Shown: positions 37,741-43,600 of the stretch, piece after piece | Numbering within the stretch: position 1 is the first letter of the stretch | Layout of the letters: every line of letters begins with the position of its first letter | NCBI GenBank assembly: GCA_002269645.1 | Contig: NIVC01000280.1 | Location: forward strand, 1-64,000 | Direction of reading: 5' to 3' | Source of the DNA: Macrostomum lignano | Lineage: Eukaryota | Length of the DNA stretch: 64,000 bases | Notes under the pieces: model-generated | Seen by the model: only the letters and a program-made list of their open reading frames with translations | Databases searched by the model: none | What the model was told of the DNA's origin: nothing | Translations under genes and position numbers: made by a program

Positions 37741-38100
37741 ATGGATTGCTAGTCTAGCGTATGGATTGCTAGTCTAGCCTATGGATTGCTAGTCTAGCCT
37801 ATGGATTGCTAGTCTAGCCTATTGGATTGCTAGTCTAGCCTATGGATTGCTAGTCTAGCCTATGGATTGCTAGTCTAGCCTATGGATTGCTAGTCTAGCC
37901 TATGGATTGCTAGTCTGGTGGACACCAGTAATGGAACGGAATGGATCGCTAATCGAGTCACTAGAAGTGATCAAACGAAGCCATGTGCCAGTGGCTCACC
38001 GTGGCGCAACTTGAAGAGCATCAAGAGAAACAGGCCGCAGCAGACAACTCGCCACTCGTGACTCCCTCTGCAAGCCATGCTGTGAGTTCGAACAAGAAAG
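37741..38100 (-). repeat. Inverted duplicate of the cadherin exon-1 cassette plus the 20-bp intron satellite
   Basis: 37917-38100 is the reverse complement of 40601-40784 with 3 mismatches in 184 bp. 37741-37916 is ~9 inverted copies of the satellite at 40785-41680. Confidence 0.95.
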
Positions 38101-38824
38101 TGCCGCGCTCTTCGGTCCCATCATCGACTCCTCGTCTGCGACCTTCGTCTTCGCGATCCGCTCTACCGTCCGCGGAAGCAGCCACCGCGGCGCTACTGCC
38201 GCGCGCTCAGGGACGCTAACGCGCACAGCCGCTTTGCTAGCGCTTTCAGCACTGCGCCCGGCGGCAAGCGTGGAGGTGTTGCATAATATTGATCAGTGTG
38301 ATGCGACAAGTAACAAGCTGAATAGTGACAAGCTGCAAGTGTATGTGATTTTCGTTGCACACACGCACTTACAGTTCACTGTGGATTTTTGAACTCCATG
38401 CGAATCACCAATAGCCGAAAAAGTTGCTCCAGTAGCAAGATAGCGTAGAGCGACACTAATCTGCTGCTATGGACTCAGAGCAAAATTGCACCCAGTCGGG
38501 TGCTGCAGACGCTTGCCAATCAGATGACACAGTTCGTCGACATGTTCCTCTCGCAACCGAAACCTCGATTGATGATCATTGTAGTCAATATCAAATTCGA
38601 AATCTATACTTTCGTTGAATGTTCGGGGACGCTTAATTGGCTCCTCCGACGGAATCTTCGGAATCTGACTCGTAGAACATGTTCGCTCAATGGATGTGAT
38701 ATGCTTTTCAACCGATTACAGGCTTGAATAGCTCGTGGTTCACTACTCAAATTGTCACTCTCGAATTTACTATGACACTAGTCAACATTAGATTCTATGC
38801 AACAAACCGCTTGTAGCGCGACTA

Positions 38825-39185
38825 GTCACTATTCACTTGTAGCTTGTCGCCTACTTGTAACTAGTCAAGTCTCTATGCAACACAAGTCACCATTCACTAT
38901 TCACTTGTAGCTTGTCGCCTACTTGTAACTAGTCAAGTCTCTATGCAACACAAGTCACCATTCACTATTCACTTGTAGCTTGTCGCCTACTTGTAACTAG
39001 TCAAGTCTCTATGCAACACAAGTCACCATTCACTATTCACTTGTAGCTTGTCGCCTACTTGTAACTAGTCAAGTCTCTATGCAACACAAGTCACCATTCA
39101 CTATTCACTTGTAGCTTGTCGCCTACTTGTAACTAGTCAAGTCTCTATGCAACACAAGTCACAAGTCACTATTCACTTGTAACTT
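38825..39185. repeat. 68-bp tandem repeat (~5 copies)
   Basis: Unit cactattcacttgtagcttgtcgcctacttgtaactagtcaagtctctatgcaacacaagtcaccatt. Confidence 0.93.
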
Positions 39186-40622
39186 GTAAAATACCATTTA
39201 TCTTAAGTTATGTGTTATACGCATTATACGTTATGGAAGACTTCAGCCGTCATGAATTCTCTGGAAAATTGAAGCCCAGCTATATTGCAAATATATACAT
39301 GTACGCTCGTAAATCAAAACTTTAAATACACACCTATAAATATTTCTAAACAAAAAGGACTTTTGAAATTTGCTAAGCAACTGTGACCAGCTCTTTAGTT
39401 CATCGGTTTCCAAACTTGAAACTTTCGGCCAGCTGAAAATTCCAGTTAAGTTTGCTGTAGGCATTCGCCGAATATGGCAATTTATGACGCATCACCGTCT
39501 TCAGTTCTTTTCTTCGCAGATCAGCAGTTTTACGCCCGTAACATCATTACAAGTAAATTTTTGAAAATTCAGCACAAAGCATTCTCTGCCTTTCTCTCGC
39601 ACTAGCTGGGAGCTTCGTCACTTTCCACTGCGTACGAGTTGTGCAGGGATGCGGTCTTGAAAAGTACATTGGGAAAATACACCAGAATTGGAGAAATTCT
39701 AGCCATGCAGGGAATTGGGAGAACAGATCCTACTGGGACTCCATCAGTGGGGTGCGCAGCCCGAAAGCCAGTCGCAATTTTTGTTGCCAGGGGCGCGGAT
39801 GCGACCCGTGCGCAGACGGCGCCAACGGGGGCCGTTTTTTTTGCATTGGAAAATGCAGCTCCAAGTCAACTATAAAGGGATTTTTGCAATGGGAGAATGG
39901 GAAGAGGAAAAAATTAGCAACTCCCACTCAAAGCCTCGCAAAGGCGGGGAGGAGGCTCCCGGCGGTCCCCAGGGCACTCATATTTCTTCTGCATTTCCTG
40001 TGCCGCCCGCCGCCACAAAGTCCTCCATCGGAGGCCGGGCCCGCCCATGCAGTGTGCCAGGGGCTGGCACTGAATCTCAGCCAATCGTTGGCTCACCTGG
40101 TTGCTCATAAACCCCCCCCACGGCTTTATTGGCAGATTTTCTCTGTTTCTACATGAATGATTTGCATTTGCTGACGCATCCGCTGGGCCAGTTTAGAGTG
40201 AAGAAACAAGTGCAGCAATTCTCTCCCCCCTCTATCTGGTTTCTCTTCTTCTTCAGCCATAAGTTTTCCCGTTTTTCCTGTTAAGCGGCTCTCACACCTC
40301 CACCAATAGCGCCAGCAGTTCCCCAACTGCCCATGCCTACTCATAACGGGATCGTAGTGAGTGTGTCTGTGCGCTGAGCAGGGAGCCCTGAGTTGCCCCC
40401 AGCAACCGCTTTGATGATGGCAGACCGGTGAGGGGGGGGCGAATCCGGTGCTGCGCGCGCTGCGGGAACAAAATGCATGCTAAAATTGACCGGCAACATG
40501 ACTTTCGACAACAATAGGAGGGAGAGCTTGGGCAAAGCTGATCCGCTACGGTTCCGTGAGAGTCAGGTGCTCAGGCTTCACCTTCACCTTCTGGCCAGCT
40601 CTTTCTTGTTCGAACTCACAGC

Positions 40623-43600
40623 ATGGCTTGCAGAGGAAGTCACGACTGGCGAGTTGTCTGCTGCGGCCTGTTTCTCTTGATGCTCTTCAAGTTGCGCCAC
40701 GGTGAGCCACTGGCGCATGGCTTCGTTTGATCACTTCTAGTGACTCGATTAGCGATCCATTCCGTTCCATTACTGGTGTCCACCAGACTAGCAATCCATA
40801 GGCTAGAATAGCAATCCATAGGCAAGACTAGCAATCCATAGGCTAGACTAGCAATCCATAGGCTAGAATAGCAATCCATAGGCTAGACTAGCAATTCATA
40901 GACTAGACTAGCAATCCATAGGCTAGAATAGCAATCCATAGGCTAGAATAGCAATCCATAGGCTAGAATAGCAATCCATAGGCTAGAATAGCAATCCATA
41001 GGCTAGACTAGCAATCCAAAGGCTAGACTAGCAATCCATAGGCTAGACTAGCAATCCATAGGCTAGACTAGCAATCCATAGGCTAGACTAGCAATCCATA
41101 GGCTAGAATAGCAATCCATAGGCTAGACTAGCAATCCATGGGCTAGACTAGCAATCCATAGGCTAGAATAGCAATCCATAGGCTAGACTAGCAATCCATA
41201 GGCTAGACTAGCAATCCAATAGGCTAGACTAGCAATCCAAAGGCTAGACTAGCAATCCATAGGCTAGATTAGCAATCCATAGGCTAGAATAGCAATCCAT
41301 ACGCTAGACTAGCAATCCATAGGCTAGAATAGCAATCCATAGGCTAGAATAGCAATCCATAGGCTAGACTAGCAATCCATAGGCTAGAATATCAATCCAT
41401 AGGCTAGAATAGCAATCCATAGGCTAGACTAGCAATCCATAGGCTAGACTAGCAATCCAATAGGCTAGACTAGCAATCCATAGGCTAGAATAGCAATCCA
41501 ATAGGCTAGACTAGCAATCCATAGGCTAGACTAGCAATCCATAGGCTAGACTAGCAATCCATAGGCTAGACTAGCAATCCATAGGCTAGACTAGCAATCC
41601 ATAGGCTAGACTAGCAATCCATAGGCTAGACTAGCAATCCATAGGCTAGACTAGCAATCCATAGGCTAGACTAGCAATCCCCATTCGCACCGCAGCCGAT
41701 GCCGCCTGCGCTGACGCCCCGGTGCAGTTAAAGTCCGTAAACGAGTCGGCAGCGGTCGGGTTGGTCATCCAGACGGTGGATGCCAGCTACACCGGCAGCT
41801 TCAGCGCCACTCCCAGCCAGTACGGCTGCTACTTCAGCGTCTCTGGCGGAGCGCTGATTCTAGCGAAGGTCCTGGACTTGGAGAACCTGACCTCATGCTC
41901 TGACGGATCAAGGACTCCAGTGGCCTCGGTTCCCAACGCTATGTCTATCGCTCTGGTGTGCACCAGCTCCTCGGTTGAGACGCTGGTTGTTAATCTTGTC
42001 GACATCAACGAGTTTGCACCGGCTTTCAATCCGAATAGTTTTAGCATCAACGTTTCCGAGGTGAGTAAGGCTTCTCATGCTGGGTAGGTTAGCAATCCAT
42101 TGTATTGATGTTGACTAGATTAGCAATCCATTGTATTGATGTTGACTAGATTAGCAATCCATTGTATTGATGTTGACTAGATTAGCAATCCATTGTATTG
42201 ATGTTGACTAGATTAGCAATCCATTCAATTGTCGTTGACTAGATTAGCAATCCATTGTATTGATGTTGACTAGATTAGCAATCCATTCAATTGATGTTGT
42301 CTAGATTAGCAATCCATTATATTGATGTTGACTAGATTAGCAATCCATTGTATTGATGTTGACTAGATTAGCAATCCATTGTATTGATGTTGACTAGATT
42401 AGCAATCCATTGTATTGATGTTGTCTAGATTAGCAATCCATGGTATTGATGTTGGCTAGATTAGCAATCCATTCAATTGATGGTAGCTAGATTACCAATC
42501 CATTGTATTGATGTTGACTAGATTAGCAATCCATTCAATTGATGGTAGTTAGATTAGCAATCCATTGTTTTGATGTTGACTAGATTAGCAATCCATTCAA
42601 TTAATGGTAGCTAGATTAGCAATCCATTGTATTGATGTTGACTAGATTAGCAATCCATTCAATTGATGGTAGTTAGATTAGCAATCTATTGTATTGATGT
42701 TGACTAGATTAGCAATCCATTCAATCGATGGTAGCTAGATTAGCAATCCATTGTATTGATGTTGACTGGATTAACACTGTAAGACCGTGGGTTGAATTGC
42801 AGAGAATCAAAACGTGAGGAGACCTCACTGGCTCACGCCAATATATTTATTGCCAAAGTTGGGGTGGGTGTAACCACCCTAAGCACGCACACGCCGCAGC
42901 GCTAAACCCCAACCCCCAAACCAGCCAGACGTGCACATCCAAGTGCACGCGCACCAACAAGCCAGACTACACTACTTTCCCCCTAGAAGCAAAAGACAGT
43001 TCCAGAGTCAAGCAAAGCCCGCCATGTACAAGTCAGGTGGCCGCCGCTCTCTCGCCGACCGCCGCGGAACCGTGACCGGCTCGGCCGGTGCCGCCGGCTG
43101 CTCCTCGGGTGCCTCGTCTGCCTGCAGCTCGGGCCAGAAGGTCACCGCGTCGCCGCCAGGATCGGCCGCCTGCCCGGGCGGCTCAGCGACGGTGCCGTCG
43201 TTGTCGAAGTCGGCGGCCGGCGGCTGGTGGTCTGCTGCGGCCGGAAGCTCCAGTGACGCCCGCCGCTGCACGAAGCACTTGAGGCGGTCGTGGTGCACCA
43301 CCAGCCGGCGCCTGCGGCCGGTCTCGTCCTGGATGCGGTAATTGACCTCGCCCAGGCGCCTCAGGACTCGGTACGGCCCCTTCCACTTGGCGCTCAAACA
43401 CCGCGTCTGGCCGCGCTTGACGACGGAGTTGCGCAGCATCACGAGCTGGCCCTCTTCGAACGGCACAAACCGAGAGTCCTGGTTGGCCAGCCGGTTGCGC
43501 TCGGCCTGGGCGCTCCGCAGTCGGCCGTGCACCGTGTCGAAGGCGCTCTGCAGGTTCTCCTGAGTCCGCCGCAGGAAGCCGTGATGTCCACCGTCGGCTG

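Follow-up and report, generated by a model that had tools for sequence, protein, structure and literature searches.

In a 64,000-nt stretch of Macrostomum lignano DNA (hereafter, the window), the first coding exon of a cadherin gene has a real, young and orphan duplicate of its cassette, which lies upstream of the gene in inverted orientation, and the feature newly recognized here is an 8-nt direct repeat flanking the whole copied block. The account we consider probable is that a 363-nt segment from the 5′ part of the cadherin gene was duplicated and inserted, inverted, 2.5 kb upstream at a break with an 8-nt stagger, as an inert DNA fragment captured by end-joining. The copy looks like a side product of a DNA break and its repair rather than a new building block for a gene. 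The locus represents a cleanly resolved short-distance duplication of a complete first-exon cassette with all signals intact, and such cassettes are the raw material assumed by exon-shuffling models and are rarely seen fresh.

Base-level comparison revealed that the minus strand at 37917-38100 is a copy of the plus strand at 40601-40784, with 3 mismatches in 184 nt. An inverted-repeat search returned arms at 37823-38103 and 40598-40878 (98% complementary, spacing 2494 nt), and the unique arm was present only twice in the 64-kb window by blastn (E about 1e-90), the inverted homology between the arms being exact and statistically overwhelming. Besides the arms, the only long-range repeats that self-blast of the window detected were (TTAG)n and the LTRs of a single retrotransposon. 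The entire copied block measured 363 nt (37738-38100), and together with its counterpart at 40601-40963 it flanks the spacer. Read along the minus strand, the block comprises the 22 nt preceding the ATG (38079-38100, with the AG acceptor at 38081-38080 and no difference from the parent), cadherin coding exon 1 (38000-38078, ATG at 38078-38076, MACRGSHEWRVVCCGLFLLMLFKLRH plus 1 nt, 2 mismatches), the first 83 nt of intron 1 (37917-37999, starting with GTGAG, 1 mismatch) and a stretch of the intron-1 satellite (37738-37916) that terminates within a unit. The substitutions were a synonymous GGA>GGG change (parent 40637, copy 38064), a GAC>GAG change that replaces Asp with Glu (D8E; parent 40646, copy 38055) and an intronic difference (parent 40715, copy 37986), while a fourth mismatch (40600/38101) lies immediately beyond the true homology. 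Parent and copy alike retained the AG, the ATG and the GTGAG donor, with 26 codons and one further nucleotide of coding sequence. The initial annotation had described an inverted copy of a signal-peptide exon with its acceptor, its donor and 83 nt of intron, had counted three differences over the 184 nt (a synonymous one, a D>E change and an intronic one), had judged the ATG, reading frame and splice sites of the copy to be intact, and had noted approximately nine satellite units behind it; the copy was borne out base for base, the mismatches by alignment and the intact signals by reading both copies, and the satellite measured 8.9 units (TRF). Judging from the 1.6% divergence of the unique sequence, the copy is young. 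In this duplicated genome, the copy is also a trap for annotation and read mapping, since it presents an additional, orphan 'start exon' in antisense orientation to the gene.

Sequence matches indicate that the parent is a real M. lignano cadherin gene. A Pfam Cadherin match (PF00028) that exceeded the gathering score was detected on exons of the plus strand (55202-55786; E 9e-8), and exons of the window matched two M. lignano UniRef entries named 'Cadherin domain-containing protein' at 93-100% identity. The parental arm, on the plus strand, starts with the 22 nt preceding the ATG (40601-40622, AG acceptor at 40620-40621) and the predicted first coding exon (40623-40701), which carries the ATG, a basic n-region and a hydrophobic core of 12 residues (mean Kyte-Doolittle 2.97) and ends in phase 1 before GTGAG; these are followed by the unique start of intron 1 (40702-40784), which includes a degenerate unit of the intron-1 satellite family, and by the satellite itself (40785-41680), which stops 15 nt short of the exon-2 acceptor. 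By direct reading, exon 1 joined in frame with exon 2 (41696-42060, split codon G/CC = Ala, donor GTGAG at 42061), and the UniRef model P0002 begins precisely at the start of exon 2 (41696). The right copy is therefore the parent, as its reading frame runs on into exon 2 of a gene verified as a cadherin. An A-D-A motif encoded in exon 2 could act as the signal-peptide cleavage site. The public cadherin models are N-terminally partial; no protein with the exon-1 N-terminus was found among 1.84 billion representatives, and an exhaustive phmmer search with the 35-aa ORF gave only two weak internal matches. A word-index protein search with exons 1 and 2 returned no match, and the same search also missed a protein with 73 identical residues. 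Exact-protein look-ups of the junction-spanning ORFs, exon 2, the spacer ORF, the retrotransposon ORF, the GPCR and the UniRef model found none on record. The unique spacer from copy to parent (38109-40600, given on the plus strand) shares no homology with the arms. Within it lie a tandem repeat of 68 nt (38826-39187) and GT[AG]AG donors at 40357, 40428 and 40556, and it probably holds the upstream region and 5′UTR of the cadherin gene, this promoter and 5′UTR role being putative.

The copied block is abutted with zero slack by a perfect (8/8) direct repeat, TGCCGCGC, located at 37730-37737 and 38101-38108 by direct reading and by script. The chance of such a flanking 8-nt repeat was about 2-3e-5, and below 1e-3 with 2 nt of slack permitted per end. 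We interpret the repeat as a target-site duplication, the mark of insertion at a staggered break, and because it brackets the left copy, the left copy is the derived one. No terminal inverted repeats were found on the 363-nt block, the ends of which (CCTATGGATTGC and, as the reverse complement of the other end, CTTTCTTGTTCG) agree at 4 of 12 positions; no poly(A) or retroelement-type tail was present, the block terminating in ...CCATAGG within a satellite unit; and no microhomology longer than 2 nt was detected at either junction. No tRNA or RNA families were found in the surroundings of the insertion site. We do not think that the fragment is a transposable element or a retrocopy. In the account favoured here, the source segment starts 22 nt ahead of the ATG, takes in the 79-nt signal-peptide exon together with 83 nt of intron 1 and stops about nine units into the satellite. 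It was inserted 2.5 kb upstream, in the opposite orientation, into a break with an 8-nt stagger, the fill-in of which duplicated TGCCGCGC on either side. The fragment probably derived as DNA from the neighbouring locus, the likeliest source being the sister chromatid, from which a piece would have been broken off or copied. One of its ends would have lain in break-prone satellite, and end-joining would then have captured it. Captured or templated insertions at double-strand breaks (filler DNA; replication-based template switching such as FoSTeS/MMBIR) are similar in that a short segment is copied from nearby, the donor remains intact and transposon ends are lacking. Such insertions are often inverted; microhomology of 2-5 nt is usual at their junctions and a target-site duplication is not, whereas the present block has an 8-nt duplication and lacks such microhomology. 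Template switching based on microhomology was rejected, the microhomology being no longer than 2 nt at either junction. An 8-nt duplication without transposon ends would point to an insertion pathway in M. lignano beyond its annotated repeats; tandem and simple repeats make up 15% of this highly duplicated genome (PMC5730564).

Other origins were weighed against end-joining capture of a DNA fragment. It appears unlikely that the copy is RNA-mediated, i.e., that non-LTR retrotransposon machinery used a 5′-truncated, unspliced fragment of cadherin pre-mRNA as the template for reverse transcription at a nick in the target and that a duplication of variable length happened to be 8 nt. The target-site duplication, preserved donor, short 5′-truncated insert and arbitrary orientation are shared with non-LTR retrocopies, and the upstream 22 nt would occur in a pre-mRNA or outron, long outrons existing in this species because 38.8% of M. 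lignano genes are SL trans-spliced (PMC5730564). However, the satellite (3′) end bears no poly(A), LINE-type or other tail, the block includes intron sequence (83 nt of it unique, the remainder satellite) as well as the 22 nt before the ATG with the acceptor, it has no retroelement sequence joined to it, and the target shares no microhomology with the 3′ end of the presumed RNA. The initial annotation had offered a staggered-break inversion scar and a foldback-like unit as alternatives, and both are disfavoured by a direct 8-mer that surrounds the left copy alone. An inversion of 2.5 kb, after which the filled-in segment around exon 1 would flank an inverted spacer in inverted orientation, seems to us decidedly improbable, even though the layout of inverted copy, spacer and parent, with inverted copies flanking the spacer, is exactly what the model of staggered breaks and fill-in predicts for the inverted duplications at Drosophila inversion breakpoints (Ranz et al. 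2007, PMC1885836). In both cases a non-repetitive gene fragment is doubled in inverted orientation across an intervening segment, and the origin there, as probably here, is by breakage, fill-in and end-joining rather than from a transposable element. But the stagger of the second break predicts an inverted repeat, GCGCGGCA, at 40593-40600, where GGCCAGCT is found instead, and the direct 8-nt duplication brackets one copy, indicating insertion into an intact site and a spacer that was not inverted; the scale is also far smaller here (0.36-kb copy, 2.5-kb spacer).

A mobile origin is highly improbable, whether the arms are taken as the terminal inverted repeats of one foldback-like element (37738-41680) or a 363-nt satellite-bearing mobile unit is supposed to have given rise to cadherin exon 1. 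The long unequal inverted arms with outward tandem subrepeats (20-nt arrays of 8.9 vs 44.7 units, which are at the same time simply the intron-1 satellite of the host gene) and a unique middle do recall foldback (FB) transposons, and some DNA transposon superfamilies typically generate duplications of 8 nt. Nevertheless, the right arm is a working, in-frame coding exon of that gene, and the block has no terminal inverted repeats. The duplication predicted around the whole unit 37738-41680 is absent (TGCCGCGC vs CCATTCGC), as is one around the right copy (GGCCAGCT upstream), and evidence of further copies is lacking, the arm and the 11-nt satellite core being confined to the locus within the 64 kb. 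The repeat-rich, redundant published assemblies of M. lignano (PMC5730564) and the position of one block end in satellite would accommodate a chimeric or mis-joined read, but an assembly artefact is the least probable reading, since it would not produce an exact 8-nt duplication of the flanking target; the copy also has 3 fixed substitutions relative to the parent and a different array structure, and the arms are 2.5 kb of unique spacer apart, unlike missed-adapter palindromes. A slim chance is left for a different source of the same clean duplication, namely a transposase- or reverse-transcriptase-type activity acting in trans, which would explain an 8-nt target-site duplication without transposon ends. 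The block would then be a module from the 5′ part of a host gene, made up of a splice or trans-splice acceptor, the ATG, the signal-sequence core and a phase-1 donor and moved as such, and would be an exon-shuffling intermediate before it meets a recipient exon, or one already in use; if this were true, such a module would need no exon or promoter of its own for maturation, with 39% of genes SL trans-spliced.

The copy is most likely a neutral, untranslated and inert orphan without a downstream partner exon, as read from its sequence. An earlier idea that it could supply a secretion signal to new sequence found no support, as neither a recipient exon nor a protein that begins with this N-terminus was found, and the acceptor proposed at 37704 has a poor pyrimidine tract and is followed by 21 codons until a stop and no consensus donor. 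The 'Polinton relic' said to lie beside the copy was not confirmed either, the polymerase-like ORFs being negative in Pfam, PHROGs and a homologue search. No phase-compatible minus-strand exon with a good acceptor was found within 8 kb downstream, the best open frames downstream on that strand were transposon relics with weak acceptors, and no cadherin-like or other recognisable coding exon was found there. Neutrality by itself predicts that the ATG, the frame and the splice sites should still be intact (P = 0.83), and the presence of 2 of the 3 substitutions inside the exon was unremarkable (P = 0.39), with no excess of conservation. Phase 1 is the typical phase for signal-peptide exons in the exon-shuffling literature, and the cassette resembles such exons in combining an ATG, a hydrophobic signal core and a phase-1 donor. 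Exon shuffling already underway, with the copy as first coding exon (behind a cis- or trans-splice acceptor) of a divergent minus-strand transcript, is nonetheless very unlikely. Every signal in the copy is intact, its GTGAG donor fits the M. lignano consensus GT[G/A]AG (PMC8629364), and SL trans-splicing would remove the need for its own 5′ exon; against this, the acceptor context TCACAG departs from the SL-acceptor motif [T/C]TNCAG, the presumed cleavage motif A-D-A sits in exon 2 and was left uncopied, the N-terminus is missing from the 1.84e9 protein representatives, no surplus conservation is seen, and neither a recipient exon (phase-compatible, with a good acceptor, within 8 kb) nor a transcript is evident. 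A head-to-head paralogue starting with the left copy was also considered and rejected, as no minus-strand cadherin exon turned up when the full set of cadherin exons was run against the window by tblastn. Strong pairing is predicted for the arms on a shared transcript (cofold -711 kcal/mol), but a hairpin-RNA role, which would require a transcript across both arms, is only remotely possible. The nearest minus-strand gene is a kinase at 23.6-24.2 kb, which has its own start.

The copy further appears to preserve an earlier state of the intron-1 satellite, as the parental array has been remodelled since the insertion, by about 17 additional units before the shared rare variants and by a new A-variant unit. 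Heavy remodelling of the array against 1.6% divergence in unique sequence would provide a local calibration of satellite turnover. The exon and a satellite dimer had no match in whole-collection scans of metagenome contigs. According to TRF, the array of the copy (37738-37916) contains 8.9 units of 20 nt and that of the parent (40785-41680) 44.7 units. In a unit map, the array of the copy and the interior of the parental array had a unit of 21 nt and a TACGC unit in common, both of them rare variants, with a spacing of 3 units in the copy vs 4 in the parent. A-variant units were absent from the copy and accounted for 19 of 44 full parental units, being commonest in the first half of the parental array.

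The unique arms of an inverted repeat were located by repeat search at 37917-38103 (minus) and 40598-40784 (plus); they are 98% complementary and lie 2494 nt apart, and a blastn search of the whole window returned these two copies only (E about 1e-90). No further long-range repeats were found in the 64-kb self-comparison, barring the LTR pair of one retrotransposon and a (TTAG)n microsatellite pair (49813-50080, with an inverted counterpart at 9086-9582). Homology proper ends at 38100/40601, and the three extra bases of the automated arms include a mismatch. Across the remaining 184 nt (40601-40784 vs 38100-37917), exactly three differences were observed: a synonymous GGA>GGG at 40637/38064, a GAC>GAG change (Asp8>Glu) at 40646/38055, and an intronic one at 40715/37986. 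Both copies retain the ATG and the AG 2 nt before it, 26 codons plus one base, and the GTGAG donor, and from both arms a 20-nt satellite runs outward, with 8.9 units beside the left arm (37738-37916) and 44.7 beside the right (40785-41680). The initial annotation had described an inverted copy of a cadherin first exon at 37917-38100 with three mismatches in 184 bp (one synonymous, one D>E, one intronic), an intact ATG, frame and splice sites, and about nine satellite units beyond it, all of which was borne out, the mismatches base by base.

A result new to this analysis is that the left copy was inserted, leaving a target-site duplication of 8 nt. The copied block (37738-38100) measures 363 nt, comprising 22 nt upstream of the exon, the 79-nt exon, 83 nt of intron and 179 nt of satellite, and TGCCGCGC stands as a direct repeat at 37730-37737 and 38101-38108, with zero slack at both block ends. 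An abutting 8/8 match was expected with a probability of 2-3e-5 for unrelated position pairs, whether in the window or in local unique sequence, and of less than 1e-3 with 2 nt of slack granted per end (an estimate whose samples fell within the many tandem arrays of the window was too high and was set aside); the 8-mer itself occurs only five times in the 64 kb. This duplication marks the left copy as derived and the right copy as the parent, makes an assembly artefact very unlikely, and tells the candidate origins apart. The ends of the block showed no terminal inverted repeats, the block carried no poly(A) or other tail, and its junctions showed no microhomology beyond 2 nt. Because the block contains intron sequence, it is not a processed retrocopy.

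We consider it probable that a DNA fragment of the neighbouring locus, with one end in the satellite, was end-joined into a break. The duplication shows that a copy of the segment went, inverted, into a target site whose cut left an 8-nt stagger that was then filled in. The fragment would derive from the neighbouring locus, plausibly from the sister chromatid, and would have been captured by end-joining; one end was in the satellite, where breaks or collapsed forks are likely, and the other was 22 nt before the ATG. The main rival is an RNA-mediated route, in which an unspliced, 5'-truncated pre-mRNA fragment was reverse-transcribed at a nicked target; this would account for both the target-site duplication and the preserved donor but leaves the missing tail unexplained, and we regard it as unlikely.

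The layout is like that of inversion-breakpoint duplications and of foldback elements, and the initial annotation had offered both as alternatives, but in each case the defining sequence was missing. Under the staggered-break inversion model (PMC1885836), a short stagger at the second break recurs in inverted form at the spacer's opposite end, so that GCGCGGCA was expected at 40593-40600, where GGCCAGCT was found instead; if 37738-41680 were a single element of the foldback or another TIR type, a duplication was expected around the whole unit, the flanks of which are TGCCGCGC and CCATTCGC. Transposons and retrocopies have the target-site duplication in common with the left copy, whereas the 363-nt block is without transposon ends and without a tail. 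The left copy is best classed as a small gene-fragment duplication that arose by insertion and is dispersed and inverted; it offers a clear case of a first-exon cassette caught soon after duplication, and its 8-nt stagger hints at a transposon-independent insertion pathway.

A further proposal had been that the copy could supply a secretion signal to new sequence, with a candidate acceptor at 37704 (minus). That acceptor did not hold up, having pyrimidines at 9/20 positions and only 21 open codons before a stop, with no GT[AG]AG donor within this frame, and the idea itself went unsupported, as the longest phase-compatible open frames up to 8 kb downstream (minus) lay in transposon debris with poor acceptors. 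No minus-strand cadherin paralogue was detected in the window by tblastn, and the minus-strand kinase, the nearest gene on that strand, has its own N-terminus. When three substitutions were placed at random in 184 nt, 83% of trials kept all of the AG, ATG, GT and open frame, and the occurrence of two of the three substitutions in the exon had P = 0.39; the intactness of the copy is therefore silent on selection. In this species the donor consensus is GT[G/A]AG and the SL-acceptor motif is [T/C]TNCAG (PMC8629364), and SL trans-splicing affects 38.8% of genes (PMC5730564). The copy's donor agrees with the consensus, and its acceptor agrees with CAG but not with [T/C]TNCAG; candidate cis donors are present upstream of both copies. 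Judged from its sequence, the copy gives no sign of function, and it appears very improbable that it represents a 5' gene module mobilised in trans and already serving, or yet to serve, as a new signal-peptide exon. A hypothetical transcript spanning both arms would pair strongly (cofold -711 kcal/mol), but nothing points to such a transcript.

The gene of the right copy is, on homology evidence, a real cadherin gene of Macrostomum lignano. Its downstream plus-strand exons matched Pfam PF00028 at 55202-55786 (E 9e-8, above the gathering score) and more weakly at 52204-52542, and finish with a Thr-rich stalk followed by a transmembrane segment. A search with the concatenated exons returned two M. 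lignano UniRef 'Cadherin domain-containing protein' entries as the best matches by far; these models showed 93-100% identity to the window exons by tblastn, with one exon identical in one model, and brought to light an additional exon at about 48015-48110. By these matches the DNA belongs to this free-living flatworm or to something extremely close. Both public models are N-terminally partial, and one begins exactly at 41696, the start of exon 2 (plus), which is preceded by cgcaccgcag and has a GTGAG donor at 42061. Exon 1 (40623-40701, plus) ends in phase 1, giving G|CC (Ala) as the codon at the junction, and reading stays open across exon 2 to the donor. A basic n-region and a hydrophobic core, with a Kyte-Doolittle mean of 2.97 over the best 12 residues, are present in the predicted N-terminus, and an A-D-A motif directly past the junction suggests that the signal-peptide cleavage site lies in exon 2. 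Exon 1 thus appears well supported by sequence logic, and none of the 1.84 billion representative proteins searched exhaustively with phmmer shares its N-terminus. A word-indexed search with exon 1+2 gave no match, though UniRef A0A1I8GJB0 has 73 identical residues and was recovered by a longer query in the same search; negatives from this search on short queries should not be trusted.

The satellite arrays have changed since the duplication. Read outward, the copy's array opens with four standard units; a 21-nt unit (CCAATAGG) comes next, then two more standard units, a TACGC unit and finally a truncated unit. The rare 21-nt and TACGC variants are common to both arrays, 4 units apart in the parent and 3 in the copy, and are preceded by 21 units in the parental array and 4 in the copy; an AGAA-ending variant, frequent among those 21, is absent from the copy. 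Either about 17 units and a new variant would have been added to the parental array, or the copy would have lost them, and whichever was altered, the array has evidently changed far more than the unique sequence (1.6%), making the comparison of copy and parental array a calibration of satellite turnover. The LTRs of the intron-2 retrotransposon differ by 0.5%, as against 1.6% for the unique sequence, which suggests that the duplication is probably somewhat older than the retrotransposon insertion.

Tandem arrays occupy three consecutive cadherin introns (40785-41680, 42085-42773 and 48438-48894). The intron-1 20-mer and intron-2 31-mer have in common an 11-nt core, TAGCAATCCAT, that is otherwise absent from the window, so exon 2 has related arrays on either side. 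In introns 1 and 3 the arrays reach within 15-20 nt of the 3' splice sites, and branch sites must therefore lie in or beside satellite units. The intron-2 element is a Ty3/gypsy-type LTR retrotransposon (42778-47719, minus) with 197-nt LTRs (99.5% identical), a 4-nt target-site duplication (ACAC), and long gag, PR-RT and RH-IN frames, these three free of stops; its pol is split between two frames, implying one apparent frameshift in addition to the normal shift from gag to pol.

About 60 nt from the insertion site, a tRNA-like stretch (about 37560-37680, minus) with A-box- and B-box-like motifs is possibly the head of a SINE; neither ARAGORN nor Rfam made a call there. A 'Polinton relic' proposed at 28955-34400 was not confirmed, its polymerase-like ORFs (32669-33505, minus) having no Pfam, PHROG or homologue match; only two fragments were recognisable nearby, one of a dUTPase (28955-29296, minus, E 1e-12) and one of mariner/Tc1-type DDE_3 (31693-32055, plus, E 5e-8). 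The M. lignano genome is more than half repetitive, with 15% tandem/simple repeats and 21% LTR elements, and its assembly is redundant owing to recent duplication (PMC5730564). Micro- and minisatellite density is extraordinary window-wide, appearing as long repetitive ORFs (for example at 4133-4978, 7079-8538, 11698-12904, 18319-19953, 25993-27282 and 58582-60089), and is consistent with that 15%. Upstream, three host genes within 20421-25909 were identified by eye from ORF translations: an armadillo-repeat-like ORF (20807-22105, minus; 432 aa), the first exon of a protein kinase (23634-24221, minus), and a two-ORF gene (24434-25909, plus) that looks like a divergent CDC50/LEM3 family member. 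Near the far end, a single-exon ORF of 358 aa (62415-63491, minus) matched rhodopsin-family GPCRs (Pfam 7tm_1 / Srw-like, E about 3e-6).
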